From contig CBFFRP010000217.1 in NCBI GenBank assembly GCA_965644295.1, forward strand, positions 186,001-250,000: DNA of 64,000 nt, read 5' to 3'. Shown one piece after another: positions 3,001 through 35,822 of the stretch (positions are counted from its first letter, which is position 1; every line of letters begins with the position of its first letter). Under the pieces are notes generated by a model, which saw only the letters and a list, made by a program, of their open reading frames with translations, did no database searches and was not told where the DNA came from. The translations under genes and the position numbers were made by a program. Source of the stretch: Paraphysomonas bandaiensis. Taxonomy: Eukaryota > Protista > Chrysophyceae.

Positions 3001-5232
3001 GCATTACAGAACAGAGATAGACCACTTTGCCAGGTGATCTCTAACTTAGCGTGTGTGTGTAAAAAAGTGATATTTTTTCTCAGCAATTATTCCGACTGGC
3101 GACATGTATTGTAAATGCTGGAAAGACGCCAATGTTTTCTGGTGACAAGTTCACAACTACTGTTCCCTTTGACGCACCAGCCACATATTTCAGAATACTT
3201 TTCTTTCAAGTAAGATTCTACTTTTTATTGAACTGACATGATTGACATGTATTTCAGGAGGGGAATGCTCTTGACATTGCGTGTGAAATGCTTATTGATT
3301 CACATAATGACATATGGGGTATTGATCCTGCCAGAGACGAAAAACAGAAATCTCAACGTCATGGAGGTGCGCAGCACGGAGCCACAGAAAATAGTAAAAC
3401 TAATGAAAACAGCCTTCCTCAAATTGGTAATTGCCGCAAGAGAAATTCCGGCGCAGTGGAAACAATGCAAATTGACAGCGACGAGAAGCTACCTGCAATT
3501 GCTGGTGCTTCTCCGAGAATCGAGCAACAACAAGGTTTTAAATTATGTGAGGAGAGACCTGATGCATGTGAAGGAGTTCAGAAGGATGACAGCAGCGTAG
3601 ATGACGGCTGGAGTGAGGATGACGACGGAGATTACTCCGTCATGAAAGTAATCACTGAGTGGGACGAGAAGTTTGCAGAAGAGAAAGCCCGTGTGGCCAA
3701 GGACTTTGCATTATTTTCTCTGGAATGTATAGTAGAGCTGTGTGAAAGTCGATTAGAACTGCAGGACAGGGTGTATGAAAAGTCACCCGGTCTGTTTCAT
3801 TGTTTATATGGTATGTTATTGCACTGCTTTGCTCGCTGTATCTCCGTTGATATGCAGTTTAGGTTTACTGACCCCTAAAAAGCGAAACTTTGATAGAGAA
3901 ACTGACATCAAGTGTGACGTGATGGAATATACTATTGCGAGTGATGGCTCTCTTTCTCTTGGGAATTTTCGGCCACATATGGGTATTGTTGGTGCTACGG
4001 CCAAAGCAATTCGTGTTCTTGTTAGAAGGCATGCGAAGATTCGCACGCTCGTGCGCAATTCCGGCTGTGTAGTTGGTCTCATCGATGCTCTTGATATGTC
4101 GTACGCTATTGATGACAAAGTGCTTGGAATACATGTGGTAACGGCAATAGAGCAGTTAATTATAAGAAATGTCGAAGCATGGTAATCGAATCCTACTTTA
4201 AATTCTGCACTTGATATTATTCCACTTATATCAGGGATTTCGTAAAGAGTGCGGCTGGTATGAAGGGTCTCCTACAACTTTGCCACATGGGAAATGCTGC
4301 TGTTAGAATAATTGCGAGCACAGAAATTATATCTCGAATACATCCTGTACACGATCGTAGTATATATGCTGTAACTGAAGATGTACTGAACAACAATGGC
4401 CTCTCAACTATTATACGGATGCTCCATTCGAACAATGGAGGGGTTCAAACCAATGCATTGACTCTCCTGCGCTCATTATGTGTGAATAAGCTGGCATGTC
4501 GCCGAGCAGTACTGACTCCAGAATTTATTGCCGAGATTGCTGTGCTACTGTTCTCACCTGAAGTGTCTGTTGTTCGCGTGGCTTGTGAAGTTATGCTTGT
4601 TCTTGGCGCAGAAGATCAGTTCACGTTGCGCAAGCTTGTGGAGAGCATGGAAAGTAGTGTTGCGGTGTTGGAAGGATATGACACAGGGGTGCTGGACAGG
4701 TGCAATATTGCATATTTTCATTACGTATGAGTTACTTTTGTGTTCTACTATAGGTACACTAATGAAAATGGGACGGGAATGTCAATCTCTGCTCGTCTGA
4801 TGGATATTGTCAAGGGGGTGCTCTCAGTCCAACCGATAAGTGAAACAGCTTTCAAACGTAGCTGTAGTAGTCCTGGTAACATCGAAGAGTATCCAGAGAC
4901 TCTTGTTGCCATGTCTGACAGGTCAACATTGACTAATACGTTTTATACCACAGAGCGCATAACAGCAGAATTTTATGATGATCCCCGTCTAATACAAGAA
5001 CTTGTTTCCCTTTCAAATTTAGCTGCCAACGTCTTAGCAGGAATGACAGGTACGTCTATGAGAATGGTTATCCTCTTTGACCGTGTGTGCAGATAGTGAA
5101 GAGGCTAATTGGCCAGATGGTGGTGCTCCTCTACGACATACAATGAAAGCGTCAGGCTTACTTCCAGGAATAGGAGATTTGGAAGGAAGGAAGCCTAGTG
5201 ATGGAAATATATTAAATTATAAAGCGTACTAA
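1..5232 (+). CDS. Large multi-exon protein with C-terminal armadillo/HEAT-like repeats; 5' end lies outside the window
   Basis: Chain of same-strand ORFs (145-615, 695-1225, 1274-1930, 2018-2566, 2791-3114, 3288-3878, 3775-4185, 4260-4730, 4740-5096) separated by short GT-AG introns. ARM-like text 'LNNNGLSTIIRMLHSNNGGVQTNALTLLRSLC' and 'VRNSGCVVGLIDAL'. Last exon reads DSEEANWPDG...NYKAY with TAA at 5230-5232. Confidence 0.7.
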
Positions 5233-5673
5233 TTTCTAAATAATAGCGTTGTGTGAATAGCCGGTCATGTTGTCTCGTGCGTGTCAGTATTTTAATTTTA
5301 TGTGAGGTGTTGTGGCTTACATGCTACCTGGAATGTATTGTGTGTATTGTAAATTTGTAAATTATTAATTGCAGTCATTGTAAATTATTAATTTACTATG
5401 TAAATATAGCTGGCACTTGATTCGCAAAATATCTTCTGTACATTGAAATAGCATTCACATGACTACAATATACATACTCACCAGTGATAGGAGTTTTTCC
5501 AACAAACTATGCATATATTTTCGAATGTAGACCTAATATTACAATATATAAAACATAAATATATAATTCTATGATCCTATATACTATATAATAGCTTCTG
5601 TTAAGTCTGGAATGATATGCTCTTAAACGAGCTTCGTATAAATGCCGAAGTTATATGTCGACTGTTGAAATCA

Positions 5674-6537
5674 CTATTCAGCAACAGCCCACATAACCTC
5701 TTCAAATTCCATGCATATCGAAAATCCGAGGCTTTTATAACATTTCACTGCTGCTAAATTATCGCTGGCGACGTTTAGTCCTATGTACTTGATATCATCT
5801 CGAATCAACCGCTGTACTAGTGCAGCAGTGACAGAAGTAGCTAGGCCACATTTTCTGTGCAGTGGATGCACCGCTATGTTTCCCAAAGCAGCCACCCGAT
5901 GACGCTTCGAGCAAACATGCACACCTGCGATTGCACATATGTTGCTATTTGTCGTTTCACACCGCCGAGCAGAACGAATACACAGCATGCATCCAGTAGA
6001 CAGCATGCGAGGATCAAACCAATTGTTAGGGTACGCAAGTGAATAAAATGCACTGACTTCCTCATGATCTGACGGTGACAAGGGCTCCACGGCACTGGTA
6101 TCAACACCCCACACTGCATCAGCATTTGACAAATAATACCGCTGATATGGTACTCTAGACTCGATAATATATCCGTGAAGACGTGTATGAAGAGCCTCCA
6201 CTAACCCCTCTGCTAGATGAGAGTGAAACCGCTGCGGCATATCAGACACATCAAACAGTTCGCTTCTGATGAGCCTCTCACCCCACTCGACACGTGACCC
6301 CAGAGCAACCAGAGTTGGTGGGTTGGATCCTGTGTAGAGTAATACGGTGAACTGTGTGTGTTGGTTGACAGATACAGATATCCATGAGGTGTGCGGCCAG
6401 AAGATATCGTCCAGATCGCCCATCTCATACAGGTGGATGTAGGGGCTGTCGCGCAGGAAGAAAGAGGCCAGATCATCCTGTGAGTGTATCTTATGGATAC
6501 ACATGCCCTCTGTCTCTACTGGAGCTGTGTATGACAT
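5674..6537 (-). CDS. GNAT-family (FR47-like) N-acetyltransferase, intronless
   Basis: 287-aa ORF. Acetyl-CoA motif A 'LGNIAVHPLHRKCGLATSVTAAL' and motif B 'GLNVASDNLAAVKCYKSLGF'. Confidence 0.9.
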   Translation of the reverse strand: MSYTAPVETEGMCIHKIHSQDDLASFFLRDSPYIHLYEMGDLDDIFWPHTSWISVSVNQHTQFTVLLYTGSNPPTLVALGSRVEWGERLIRSELFDVSDMPQRFHSHLAEGLVEALHTRLHGYIIESRVPYQRYYLSNADAVWGVDTSAVEPLSPSDHEEVSAFYSLAYPNNWFDPRMLSTGCMLCIRSARRCETTNSNICAIAGVHVCSKRHRVAALGNIAVHPLHRKCGLATSVTAALVQRLIRDDIKYIGLNVASDNLAAVKCYKSLGFSICMEFEEVMWAVAE

Positions 6538-20281: not shown

Positions 20282-20388
20282 TATTCGGTTCGATATTAAA
20301 GCTTGAGTGCAATTCAGTTGCTAATATGCGTTCCTAGAATGATACATGAGCGACAAGACCACTCCACTGGAATACATGATGTACTGCT

Positions 20389-20868
20389 GTATGTATGTAT
20401 GTATGTATGTATGTATGTATGTATGTATGTATGTATGTATGTATGTATGTATGTATGTATGTATGTATGTATGTATGTATGTATGTATGTATGTATGTAT
20501 GTATGTATGTATGTATGTATGTATGTATGTATGTATGTATGTATGTATGTATGTATGTATGTATGTATGTATGTATGTATGTATGTATGTATGTATGTAT
20601 GTATGTATGTATGTATGTATGTATGTATGTATGTATGTATGTACTGTATGTATGTATGTATGTATGTATGTATGTATGTATGTATGTATGTATGTATGTA
20701 TGTATGTATGTATGTATGTATGTATGTATGTATGTATGTATGTATGTATGTATGTATGTATGTATGTATGTATGTATGTATGTATGTATGTATGTATGTA
20801 TGTATGTATGTATGTATGTATGTATGTATGTATGTATGTATGTATGTATGTATGTACTGTATGTATGT
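20389..20868. repeat. (TATG)n microsatellite, ~480 bp, in the divergent LAP/MFS intergenic region
   Basis: Read directly. Two single-C interruptions (tactg) at ~20644 and ~20857. Confidence 0.98.
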
Positions 20869-30562: not shown

Positions 30563-30668
30563 TTTATTGAGAGGAGTATATCGATCAGGGCAATGTGAGG
30601 AATGAGTTACTTCTAAGCTGTGTGTATGGTGTATATGGTGGTTGTTTGTGTAATATACGGCGGTACAC

Positions 30669-30778
30669 CATACACATACATACATACATACATACATACA
30701 TACATACATACATACATACATACATACATACATACATACATACATACATACATACATACATACATACATACATACATG
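30669..30778. repeat. (TACA)n microsatellite, left flank of the transposon
   Basis: Read directly. Confidence 0.95.
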
Positions 30779-30990
30779 TATATTGTGAGGGAGAGCGGGT
30801 GTGAAAAAAACTTTTTTTTCTCTCTTCTTCAATCTTCTTTGATCGCGATTACAAAACTTGCTCACCTACATTAAACAGTACCATAAACCCACAATTACCA
30901 TGATAAGCACTGCAAATCAAGGTGATTTCTTCTACAATGTGTTGAAGCAACCTTCTCTCACATGTTTGTCATTCGCAGCACCATATTTAC

Positions 30991-32021
30991 ATGTATTCCG
31001 AGGCTTTCCGTCTTTTAATTTTGGATGTGTTTGATCACTCTCTGGAAATCACAAATTCTGTGGCCGCATCACTAGATCATATATACGAGAAATACGATGT
31101 GTCCCAAAGCACAGTTAGAAGGTGGTTGGACAAATATCTGGACACTGGATCAGTTAAACCAGAGTCTTCACACCATTCGCACCACACTGTCATTTCACTC
31201 GAGCATATCAATTTTGTTAAAGAGTTGCTGGCAGAAAATTCAACTTATTCCAACGAAGAATTATGCGAAAAGGTTTTTAATGTGTACGGCGTGGCGTACT
31301 TGGAGCACCAAATGAAGCATGCCATGAACACTGAGGGCTATACCGTAAAAGTTTGTCAAAGAATTTCCCACAACAGAAATGAGGGCTTGAGGCGTTACTA
31401 TAAGAATAATTTGGCCCGATCATTGGATGAAATTCCAGCTCGCTGCTATGCTGTTGTGGACGAATCACATCTCCAGCCGGCAGAAGTTCTACGCCGATAT
31501 GGGCGTTCACCACATGGCTACCCTGCCTTCGTGAGTGGTGATGTTATAGGCCACTTCAATCCCCAAGTTAGTTGTTGTGCCATTGCTGCAATGTCTATCG
31601 AAGGAGTTTTTGCTGTTACTGTACACGAAGAAAATGTTGATCATAATACATTTCTAGATGCCCTAGAACATGACATCTTTCCCCACATGAACCCTTTTCC
31701 TGGGGATCGCAGTGTGCTGCTCATGGATAATGCTTCGACGCACGTGAAGATAGATATTTATAATATGTGTGCAGAATTCGGCGTGATGGTTGTGTTTCTC
31801 CCCCTTATTCTTATGATTTTTCACCAATTGAACCCGTATTTCATCTTGCCAAAGCGCACATTAGAAAGAAGTGGGGAATTATGTACGCATATAAACCACT
31901 TGCAGCTCAACTACATGAAGCTTTGTGGTCATGCTGTACTGCCGAAACTGCGTGCAATTTATTCAATCGAGTGGATATTACCGTTACTTGGAAAGAACAG
32001 TGCGAAGCCTGTAACTATTGA
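30991..32021 (+). CDS. IS630/Tc1-like DD34E transposase (~343 aa), interrupted by a 1-nt frameshift
   Basis: HTH 'YDVSQSTVRRWL', D1 'AVVDES', D2 'LLMDNASTH', E in 'FLP/PYSYDFSPIEPVF'. Adding one C to the C-run at 31800-31804 joins ORF 30991 to ORF 31767-32021 and gives exactly 34 residues between D2 and E. Confidence 0.9.
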
Positions 32022-32232
32022 TCATTTGCAGATTATACTCTATACTCTACTCACTAGTTACTAATATAGATGTACTGATGATTGAATGTGATATGCTTGC
32101 TACTACTTCGTGATAGAATATGATTAATTATACGCAATAGATTCAAGTAATATTAATAAATCAAAAAAACAAAATTTTGAAAAGTTTGTGGAGAATTTAA
32201 AATATCAGTTCATACAGTTGCATACTAAGAAG

Positions 32233-33265
32233 CAGGGATAGGGAACAATATATTGTATTGCAATATATTGTACAATATATTGCAATATATTGTAAAATAT
32301 ATTGATTGGTGGACTGGTCAAATATTCCATCAATAGTGTTTCTGTTAATAGAGCTCACAATACTATTGCAATATATTGCAATCAATATTATGATAGTCAT
32401 ATAAGAGAAGATCCTCAACTGTATGGTGCAAAATATACGCCTCTGTATACAAATATCCGGAAAATAAGAAAAAAAGCCTATTTTTGATGTTATTTTCTAT
32501 TTTTTATGTATCGCCAGCTCAAACAGCACTCTACACCTCTCCACATGTATGTACAGTACTTCTCTTAATATAGTATATATATCCTATAGTGACAAGAAGA
32601 GACAACTGAAGAATTGGACTTGACAAGATCTGAGAAAGATGCTGTTAGAATATATCTCCGTTCAGACAGTGATTATTGCAACAATACAGAGGATGATGAA
32701 GCTGAAGTTGGCTATGCGGAAAAAATTCTTCAATCAGCTCAAAAACTTAAGAAGCGAAAAGTTGAAATATCTAAGTACAGGTGCACGAGTCATGTAGTAT
32801 GTACTTCCAATACGTGTGAACGCCTGTTCAGCGCAGCAAAACTGATTATATCAGTGTTGCGCAAACGTATGCATCCTACTACACTTAATATGCTGTTGTT
32901 TCTGAAAGCTAACCGACAGTTGTGGCCGGATGCAAGCATATTTCAATCAATATTGAATGAATATGGTGATGATGATGTCACCGATGATGGCTCAGAGGAT
33001 GAGTATGAGGAAACTTTTAATTAGTTAAGAGTAGTGGGTTTGATTATCAAGTGACCTTAGACCTTATAAAATATGGCAAGTACTAAAAATGAAAACTACG
33101 GATGTGTTTACTTACTGATTAGTCATACTAATATATTGCAATATATTGTACAATATATTGCAATATATTGCAATAGTATTGTAGGGCCGGTTTAAAAAAT
33201 CCATCAATACTATTGATGGAACGCTACCTAACAATAGTATTGCAATATATTGTTCCCTATCCCTG
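32233..33265 (+). mobile_element. Non-autonomous hAT element (1033 bp) nested in the Tc1-like transposon
   Basis: 23-bp TIR CAGGGATAGGGAACAATATATTG. Perfect 8-bp TSD CTAAGAAG (32225-32232 and 33266-33273). Subterminal TTGCAATATATTG repeats. Internal hAT C-terminal fragment. Confidence 0.93.
32614..33024 (+). pseudogene. hAT transposase C-terminal dimerisation-domain fragment
   Basis: SKYRCTSHVVCTSNTCERLFSAAKLIISVLRKRMHPTTLNMLLFLKAN; the DDE core is missing. Confidence 0.85.
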
Positions 33266-33463
33266 CTAAGAAGAAAAAAGAAAATCGGTTAGTGAGTCTA
33301 AACCTAAATTTCGATGCATCGGAGCGTATGTGTTAAATTCATCCAAAAATTACCAAGATTCGAAATAAATAATAAATGAGACCCGGCAGATAACGATTGA
33401 CTGCAATCTGTTCTATTTAGTAAGGGTCGGCAGGATAAGGAATTTCATACTCGGCCTCATATG

Positions 33464-35119
33464 CTATCCACTCACCCCTCTCATCCTTTCGCATTCCTTC
33501 TCCCCAGGCAAATCGCTGTTGGCGATAACGCGATGCATAATCAAAATCCCTGTGGCCGTGGTAATATTCTGGCGGGTAGCCATACAGCATGTGATGCGGA
33601 TAATGCCGAGGAGCAGATCCCTGTGGGTAATACGGAGGAAGCTGCTGCTGAAAAGGAAAACCCCCAGTTGGATAAATAGGAGGGGGTATACCCCGTAGGG
33701 CGATGGTCCACAGTCTGGTGGAAGGGGAAAAGGGACACCAAAAGAAGGGCCACTACTTCCAGCAGGGGGAACACCAATTGGGATAGGCCAACCTTGTGCT
33801 GGAACACCTGGAGGAGCTGGTAGAGCAGGGGGCGGTGGTGGTGGCGGGTGTGGTCCTATTCGAACCGACGAGAATATGATATTTTCACGGGCTGCAGGTA
33901 TTGGCTTATTACCCCCCTTGAGGTCACTATATTTTGGGAAGTCTTGACCCATCCAATCCAACTTGAGAACCCATGTATCGAGTGTCGGGTCATACTCCAA
34001 CGGGTCTTCAGCTGCACGTTCTTCACCTTCTAGGGTACTAAAGTATTCACATAAGTATGTTCTTAACTGCGAGTAGCTCTTTACTTTCTTGCCCTCGGGA
34101 AGCTCGAGTAGATCTTTCAATTTGCTATCAGAAATCAAATCTTTCTTGCTCCAAGCTTTGGCACGACATCGCTCGATATGCAAGCGATTCCTTTGTGCTT
34201 CCAAATGACTCGATGTGTCCGCCGCATCATGTTCACTGGCGGTTGAAAGCTTAAGACCTGATTGACCACCGTGACCAAATCCTCTCTGCTTGCGGATACC
34301 ACTTTGCATACTTTTTGGAGGATTAAGCTCGAAGAGTCTTTGACCCTCTTCACTGCACTCGGTCATGGCTTCTTTCATTGCCGGTGACCAGTACGTGTTC
34401 ATATCATTTCCTGGACGATGATTCAGGCCAACTTTGAAATATTTTGAGTGCATGTATTTACAGAGGGGAAGATCATTCTGTTTATGTTTAACAAGCGCAA
34501 GGGAAGAATCAACAAAGCTGAGCTGTCTCTGTAGTATCACATCGTCTGGGCAATTTTGGAACGGGACACCAGCAATCACCACATAGTGGGAAGCGTTTTC
34601 CCGACAACACTTCCTATCGTGATCTGTCTGGCGTCTAGTGGGAAGTAACGGTATGTCCAATTCTCCATCGGGAGGGATCATGTGGAAATTACCAATGATA
34701 CCAGAACTTGTTGCAGTTCGAACAGTAATACCTCTGCTGAAGTCTATCCTGAGTTGGTCGTTGAAGTCTGATAGTGGTGGCAATAACTTTTGATTATACG
34801 CTTGCCTCGCTACGCCCTCAACGAGTGCATGCAAGAATGCATGACCTTTGACACGCCAGATATTACTATCGTCTTCAAAAAGATTACCTCCTGGAATCTA
34901 AAAAAAATGTTATATTAAAACATCTTTAGCAGTAATTGCAGTAATTCTCACCCAAATCGTTAATTGGTCTGTCGAAGAAGTTAACTCGGACCGATTTACA
35001 GAGAATGCCTGTGCTTCCTCTCGAAATTTAGTCAAAGCGACAATTTTTACTCGCACCCACAGACCTTCTTCTATTTCAGAGTTTTGGCTGTCTGATGACA
35101 TGCTGCGAATGACAAACAT
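33464..35119 (-). CDS. Transposon-borne orphan protein (~527-533 aa, 2 exons, Pro-rich segment)
   Basis: Exon 1 35119 (or 35101)-34952. A 54-nt GTGAGA...TTTTTTAG intron (34951-34898) joins it in frame (TIW|IPGGNLFEDD...FLHALVEG) to ORF 33464-34834. No domain recognised. Confidence 0.7.
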
Positions 35120-35300
35120 GTGAGAGAAGGTTGCTTCAACACATTGTAGAAGAAATCACCTTGATTTGCAGTGCTTATCATGGTAATTGTGGGTTTATGG
35201 TACTGTTTAATGTAGGTGAGCAAGTTTTGTAATCGCGATCAAAGAAGATTGAAGAAGAGAGAAAAAAAAGTTTTTTTCACACCCGCTCTCCCTCACAATA

Positions 35301-35583
35301 CATACCTACATACCTACATACATACATACATACATACATACATACATACATACATACATACATACATACATACATACATACATACATACATACATACATA
35401 CATACATACATACATACATACATACATACATACATACATACATACATACATACATACATACATACATACCTACATACATACATACATACATACATACATA
35501 CCTACATACATACATACCTACATACATACATACATACATACATACATACATACATACATACATACATACATACATACATACAT
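35301..35583. repeat. (TACA)n microsatellite with TACC variants, right flank of the transposon
   Basis: Read directly; same orientation as the left tract. Confidence 0.95.
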
Positions 35584-35822
35584 CACATGACATCTTTGTG
35601 TTGTAGAGCAGTATACAGCAGTATACATCATAATACCACGTATACTACAACTAATTCCTGGATAATTCTGACGTTACTGTTATACATCACACGTATAAGC
35701 CGTATACAGTACCGTATACGGCTGTATATCTCAGTAGCAGTTAGTCGTCTGTTGAGCTGTGTGATTATGTATATATACGACGAGCCTCATATAGAAACAC
35801 TCGACTAACACACTCTGACAGC

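Follow-up and report, generated by a model that had tools for sequence, protein, structure and literature searches.

A two-gene element occupies positions 30783-35298 of a 64,000-nt stretch of the Paraphysomonas bandaiensis genome (assembly GCA_965644295.1, contig CBFFRP010000217.1); we refer to this stretch as the window, and all coordinates are window positions. The element measures 4,516 bp in this copy and is very probably a young DNA transposon, autonomous and of IS630/Tc1 type, from a lineage that always carries two genes arranged tail to tail, a transposase gene at the left end and a second open reading frame (ORF), ORF2, at the right end. A first-pass annotation, made from the letters alone, had postulated a two-gene family of this sort, and the family proved real: ORF2 is found in 13 of 13 genomic copies, homologues of it occur in five other element families, and the transposase and ORF2 trees are congruent.

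The two ends of the element are perfect mirror images. The arms at 30781-30980 and 35101-35300 (200 nt each) are 100% complementary and consist of a TA dinucleotide and a 198-bp terminal inverted repeat (TIR), as had been claimed initially. The left TIR spans 30783-30980 on the forward strand and the right TIR 35101-35298 on the reverse strand, and the TA dinucleotides at 30781-30782 and 35299-35300 are the presumed target-site duplication. TA flanks both ends in 13/13 genomic copies and at three additional sites in marine metagenome contigs. A (TACA)n tract encloses the element (30668-30780 and 35299-35585). We detected no evident repeated binding site of the IR/DR type within the TIR and no Rfam family in the element.

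The transposase gene (30991-32024, forward strand) encodes 343 residues when intact; its frame is broken in the assembly at a run of five C (C5, 31800-31804). Its ATG at 30991 is located 10 nt inside the left TIR end. The protein matches Pfam DDE_3 (E 7.6e-10, 39.3 bits, cut-off 28.6) and the NCBIfam equivalog for IS630 family transposases, NF033545 (102.1 bits versus a cut-off of 100), and has weak helix-turn-helix matches at its N terminus. An alignment with ten relatives reveals the invariant residues D157, D246 and E281 in DD34E spacing (codons 31459-61, 31726-28 and 31830-32). The class of the enzyme and the position of its start codon are thus as annotated in the first pass. The LPPYSYDFSPIE motif, which contains the catalytic glutamate, is shifted to another frame by the C5 run and is in frame only with a sixth C. 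By profile score the protein resembles bacterial IS630 more closely than Sleeping Beauty or SETMAR, which the family profile reaches weakly (E 0.02-0.16). The DDE_3/IS630 transposase, the DD34E triad, the TIRs and the TA flanks place the element within IS630/Tc1/mariner. Typical members of this group have a single gene, but here a conserved second gene is present; this makes the element a variant, and its membership stands.

ORF2 is encoded on the reverse strand and consists of a first coding exon of 50 codons starting at ATG 35101 (34952-35101), a 54-nt GT..AG intron (34898-34951) and a second coding exon (33417-34897) with its stop codon at 33417-33419. ORF2 had been thought to run uninterrupted, but as assembled its frame is broken at a run of five G (G5, 33682-33686), and its C terminus differs from the one first read. 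With a sixth G (L036), exon 2 encodes 493 residues; the full product has 543 residues and is identical to a public protein (P0022).

We compared read contigs over 30783-35130 from four sequencing runs, of which two are metatranscriptomes (X5, polyA, and X9, cDNA), one is probably RNA (X1) and one is DNA-like (X18). Contigs of X5 and X1 lack the 54-nt intron, the shorter side of the joint measuring 151-153 nt; X18 retains it. The intron is also absent from P0022, from a 2.7-kb transcript contig (L151/L152) in its L151 form, and from P0017, which together with P0021 represents the element among MMETSP transcripts from a cultured marine protist. Transcription of ORF2 and splicing of the predicted spliceosomal intron are therefore both borne out by RNA contigs.

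The two mRNAs share a leader exon that corresponds to the outer 139 nt of the TIR. In the transposase mRNA this exon covers 30783-30921 (forward strand) and is followed, still in the 5' untranslated region, by a 57-nt GT..AG intron located in the TIR (30922-30978). RNA contigs connect 30894-30921 to 30977 onward, and the joint in X5 and X1 reads 30919>30977 (cut +2). The same 57-nt joint is present in the Logan RNA contigs L159 and L160; the DNA contigs L153-L158 retain the intron. The upstream side of the left-TIR joint in X5 and X1 measures only 22-26 nt, as is to be expected when a leader is common to two transcripts and the assembly graph branches.

The mirror exon is complete in L151, which contains the whole outer 139 nt of the right TIR (35160-35298), followed by C-ATG at 35102/35101. 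L151 and L152 both join 35160 to 35102, removing the corresponding 57-nt intron from the 5' untranslated region of the ORF2 mRNA (35103-35159, reverse strand), and encode the 543-residue P0022, identical to the spliced ORF2 model. The X1 and X5 records stop at 35102/35104 with 22-28 further letters. Of the two start codons initially considered for ORF2, ATG 35119 lies within this TIR intron and is therefore intronic; the start is ATG 35101, which the leader joins directly. The two mRNA sequences diverge 2 nt past the splice acceptor, and the ATG is found 1 nt (ORF2) or 12 nt (transposase) from the acceptor. That the TIR encodes the shared leader exon and intron accounts for the long, perfect repeats.

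An upstream ATG in good context is located in the shared leader exon (30900-30902 on the forward strand, mirrored at 35179-35181 on the reverse strand). After splicing it opens an upstream ORF of 25 codons in the transposase mRNA and of 17 codons in that of ORF2; in both mRNAs it overlaps the main start, and it may damp translation of both genes. Both genes are read inward from the ends, each through the 139-nt leader exon and with loss of the 57-nt TIR intron. In the mechanism we propose, the transposase would cut and paste the element at TA dinucleotides. The mirror-image ends would subject both genes to the same transcriptional and translational control, including the shared upstream ORF, and ORF2 would act as a dedicated partner of the transposase. 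Such a leader design amounts to a compact way of expressing two genes under identical control.

L151/L152 extends ∼770 nt past the ORF2 stop codon, antisense to the transposase as far as 31616. This extension matches window positions 33266-33419 and 31616-32232 and covers, in antisense, about the last 400 nt of the transposase coding sequence. In the polyA run (X5), the contigs of the two genes end ∼170 nt apart. The 3' ends of the two transcripts appear to overlap, and this convergent overlap could make double-stranded RNA.

Searching the 62.6-Mb genome with the TIR returned 26 matches of 99-100% identity, corresponding to 13 elements, and no solo TIRs or short derivatives were among these matches. 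Both genes are present in all 13 copies. The other twelve copies measure 3,458-3,476 bp, and when the 13 copies are oriented and aligned, only 43 columns vary. Beyond microsatellite sequence their flanks are mutually unrelated, which makes each copy a separate locus. Tracts of (TACA)n/(TGTA)n, which make up ∼1% of the window, contain seven of the 13 copies, suggesting a strong preference for TA within the (TACA)n microsatellite. A further (TACA)n/(TGTA)n tract is present at window positions 20379-20868.

The copy in the window contains a nested hAT insertion, described below. In marine metagenome contigs, the hAT-less form of the element occupies three more sites flanked by TA, none of which is among the 13 genomic sites, and words of the element's sequence are present in runs that bear three different organism labels as well as in several marine metatranscriptomes. 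These additional marine sites and run occurrences, together with the near-identity of the copies, indicate recent and probably ongoing mobility. The most diverged copy (L038, G000:C241:68740-72797) has a 13-bp deletion in ORF2, corresponding to window positions 34638-34650, and the MMETSP transcript P0017 carries exactly this frameshifted ORF2; a defective copy is thus also transcribed.

We located ORF2 homologues tail to tail with related transposases in five other families, four represented by metagenome contigs and one by an element in this genome; compared across the families, these transposases are 64, 53, 49, 41 and 33% identical to that of the window element. Metagenome contigs of 3.4-4.7 kb with transposases 63, 53 and 45% identical to that of the window element each have a convergent ORF2 homologue. 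The homologue in L039 shares 40% identity over 353 residues (E 5e-73), the one in L041 32% (E 4e-16) and the one in L046 25% (E 6e-7). A profile search identified the homologue in L071, whose transposase is 50% identical, and that in L068 (G000:C249:7000-15500), a 3,682-bp element of this genome with 187-bp TIRs and a transposase of 33-35% identity. Perfect TIRs are also present in L041 (156 bp) and L046 (127 bp), and the L046 TIR (1-127 and 4621-4747) includes the start codon and the first four codons (MEHH) of both genes. The window family, L039 and L041 all place the first coding intron after 'IW' and before 'IP'.

For the six families, the transposase tree and the ORF2 tree agree in their unrooted topology, out of 105 topologies that could have been obtained, with supports of 0.78-0.999. 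ORF2 evolves faster than the transposase, the closest pair sharing 42% identity in ORF2 versus 64% in the transposase. Across the 62.6-Mb genome, all ORF2-like sequence belongs either to such elements or to a single decayed relative, located on contig C375. A phmmer search of 1.84 billion cluster representatives returned six ORF2 matches, all of them element products or short metagenome gene fragments, and word-indexed searches of 5.8 billion proteins, one with a single sequence and one with a profile, returned nothing beyond element-borne matches. Scanning metagenome contigs for ORF2 peptide patterns yielded no relatives; scanning them with the transposase alignment recovered relatives.

Three side observations concern individual family members. 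The L046 TIR holds a candidate GT..AG intron (GTAAGT...TTGACAG), and leader introns located in the TIR may be a general feature of the two-gene lineage. L068 lies between 932-bp inverted repeats (570-1501 and 5498-6429) that hold fragments resembling the ORF2 N terminus; its ORF2 has an R/S/H-rich tail, and L068 may be a nested or rearranged older element. In the decayed relative on C375 (L070, G000:C375:39500-46500), the transposase is ∼70% identical with stop codons, and the ORF2 remnants form a near-perfect 303-bp palindrome (3884-4186 and 4231-4533).

Several points speak against the reading of 30783-35298 as an autonomous element in which paired genes are driven from within paired ends. 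As assembled, none of the 13 genomic copies keeps both frames intact, and if the C5 and G5 calls are real, the window copy is defective. We infer the TA duplication from the flanks, and when the assembly was searched with empty-site patterns for three copies located in unique sequence, none was found; of the duplication originally claimed, the TA flanks hold at all sites, and the duplication itself is deduced. The original proposal that the TIR is an inward-facing promoter has likewise stood in part. The same leader exon and 57-nt intron do serve both mRNAs, but L151 carries 146 nt of flanking (TACA)n sequence ahead of the TIR and contigs cannot show where transcripts start, so that a promoter in the TIR is a possibility only. 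No known fold supports a role for ORF2 either: structural models of ORF2 compared with the PDB using Foldseek and VIA-align gave best Z scores of 3.7 and 3.4 and Foldseek E values above 0.1, the models being of moderate confidence. The last point concerns a distant relative, L074, a 3,890-bp GC-rich metagenome contig with an IS630-like transposase of 32% identity, which has an unrelated convergent gene. The gene in question consists of a single exon of 665 codons and encodes an acidic tract and, at the C terminus, a CxxC...CxxC motif. The slot for a second gene may thus have been refilled at least once, and different genes may occupy it in different branches. We considered the L074 gene as an ORF2 homologue and ruled this out (hhalign probability 0.8%); no relative of it was found in this genome.

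The frame breaks could mean that the window copy is dead, the one-base losses being real mutations and the copy mobile only through proteins supplied by other copies. The assembly has C5 and G5 here and in nine of 13 copies at each site, and the read contigs merge all copies and do not resolve a single locus. Four of the 13 copies, however, carry an extra base at each site that restores the frames. In every one of the four runs, the contigs have one additional C following 31799 and one additional G following 33681, at full contig depth. True short runs in nine of 13 copies should give the short form in collapsed contigs, but only the long form is seen in all four runs, including the DNA-like run at full depth. 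Both breaks fall in homopolymers, the usual place of long-read errors, and further homopolymers differ among the copies (30812, 33274, 33912 and 35262). Since all four runs show C6 and G6, the C5 and G5 runs are most likely homopolymer under-calls of the assembly, and we regard a dead window copy as unlikely.

The different gene of L074 also bears on the question of whether ORF2 is a captured host gene or a selfish passenger without a role in the life cycle of the element, DNA transposons being known to capture genes. We find no host paralogue of ORF2 in the genome and no relative outside these elements among billions of proteins. ORF2 is carried by every copy, and its open frames, conserved intron position and congruent tree extend over six families, down to a transposase identity of 33%. 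A passenger gene is accordingly very improbable. The first-pass annotation had named two outcomes that would have spoken against a two-gene family, a one-off capture of a host gene by this copy and an ORF2 that is neutrally evolving and untranscribed. Neither is seen, because ORF2 is in all copies and in five further families, has no host copy, and is transcribed and conserved.

ORF2 matches no Pfam family (E up to 1), no NCBIfam family (E up to 0.1) and, in a profile search, no sequence of a solved structure. As the first-pass annotation had noted, no RuvC or tyrosine-recombinase motif is recognizable: Pfam gives no such signal, nor one for a zinc-finger-kinase. Searches of the ESM Atlas by features and by structure returned only the element's own family. 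An AlphaFold2 model of residues 1-400, built from a shallow alignment, has a predicted local distance difference test score (pLDDT) of 62, and only residues ∼280-400, which form a helix-strand domain, are confident; residues 262-400 modeled alone reach a pLDDT of 73. The Foldseek comparison that had been suggested as a route to a known fold gave no significant match, and the domain model has no significant neighbor in the ESM Atlas. The non-significant top Foldseek rows for the C-terminal domain include several winged-helix proteins (BrxR, CapW, MarR-type, forkhead and La), and we list them as a lead only. A predicted complex of the transposase with ORF2 scored 0.00, in a run made without alignments and with an uncertain partner fold, and speaks neither for nor against an interaction. 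Conserved ORF2 motifs include DFSRGIxVRT, TYW, a glycine-rich loop, TAxEHDAA and DPLEYD...W...FP.Y, and every family ends in a different low-complexity tail, rich in P/G/Y, R/S/D, H/S/R, Q, R/S/H or T/A/R.

Because the two genes are obligately linked, carry identical expression signals and diverge together, and because no host copy of ORF2 was found, our leading, still tentative view is that ORF2 is a dedicated transposase partner, most likely one that binds nucleic acid or chromatin and helps to assemble or aim the transposition complex, by analogy with the second proteins of PIF/Harbinger and MuDR. A competing account, which we consider rather unlikely and favor less than a cofactor of transposition, is that ORF2 serves counter-defense or self-regulation, opposing host silencing or acting on the element's RNA, much as VANC counters silencing for VANDAL Mutator-like elements. 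The faster evolution of ORF2 relative to the transposase (42 versus 64% identity) would fit this account, as would the apparently overlapping convergent transcripts with their potential to form double-stranded RNA. The family-specific P/G/Y-, R/S/D-, H/S/R- or Q-rich tails point the same way, R/S-rich tails being typical of RNA-associated nuclear proteins such as SR proteins. However, no domain or fold backs counter-defense, and a cofactor would account just as well for the strict co-divergence and the equal design of expression.

Ordinary Tc1/mariner/IS630 elements encode the transposase alone and are in wide use as genetic tools for that reason. The window element resembles DD34E IS630/Tc1 elements in its DDE_3 domain, DD34E spacing, N-terminal helix-turn-helix motifs, TIRs and TA flanks, but differs in its convergent, intron-bearing second gene and in its long TIRs with a spliced leader for both genes. 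The layout recalls MuDR of the maize Mutator system, in which convergent mudrA and mudrB are transcribed from ∼215-bp TIRs and a 9-bp target duplication is made. Both systems have two convergent genes, each starting at an identical long TIR, and a second protein without a recognizable catalytic domain; here, however, DDE_3 is found in place of a MULE domain, the flanks are TA rather than a 9-bp duplication, and ORF2 matches no named family. PIF/Harbinger elements encode a DDE_Tnp_4 transposase and a Myb/SANT-like second protein that acts as cofactor, and they generate a 3-bp duplication. They share the obligate two-gene, tail-to-tail layout with the window element, but neither of its proteins has such a Pfam match, the flanks are TA rather than 3 bp, and ORF2 has no known DNA-binding domain. 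A tail-to-tail PIF/Harbinger layout has been described in a brown alga (PMC12477816).

Within the IS630-Tc1-mariner group itself, additional ORFs are reported for ciliate TBE/Tec elements and for Fanzor-carrying Tc1/mariner elements (PMC7325037; see also PMC3627910). The window element shares with TBE/Tec the possession of an extra ORF, but Pfam gives no tyrosine-recombinase or zinc-finger-kinase signal here. It differs from Fanzor/TnpB elements in that ORF2 shows neither a RuvC/TnpB signal (Pfam, NCBIfam) nor a structural match. A search of the open-access full-text literature found no account of such a two-gene IS630/Tc1 lineage.

A co-diverging second protein kept over deep divergence would show that the minimal Tc1/mariner/IS630 design has been extended at least once. 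It is possible, though we propose it with more reserve than a partner role as such, that ORF2 founds a new cofactor class in a eukaryotic IS630-like lineage, made together with the transposase, and that it steers integration into (TACA)n or shields the element from silencing. If true, PIF/Harbinger and MuDR would be joined by a third TIR transposon system in which two proteins are obligatory. ORF2 represents a new protein family, and its job, be it targeting, complex assembly or counter-silencing, is open to direct test. Because nearly identical copies are transcribed, spliced correctly and polymorphic among wild marine populations, we consider the element probably active at present and suited to experiments in a culturable marine protist.

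Between the two genes, the window copy contains a non-autonomous hAT deletion derivative of 1,033 bp on the forward strand (32233-33265; 32225-33273 with its duplications). The derivative is flanked by the 8-bp target duplication CTAAGAAG (32225-32232 and 33266-33273), and its TIR begins CAGGGATAGGG. An ORF at 32614-33024 matches Dimer_Tnp_hAT (E 4e-4, 20.5 bits, just below the cut-off of 21.4). The 8-bp duplication, the short TIRs and this remnant of the dimerization domain assign the nested element to hAT. The insertion is found in the window copy only; the other copies and the contigs join 32224 to 33266, so that the 12 sister copies represent its empty site. The hAT element breaks neither coding sequence and is foreign to the two-gene family. 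The genome holds three identical copies of the 1,033-bp form and at least 35 longer copies sharing both ends (∼100% identity). In the DNA-like run X18, the word depth of the hAT element is tens to >100 times that of its host element, which suggests a very active hAT family.

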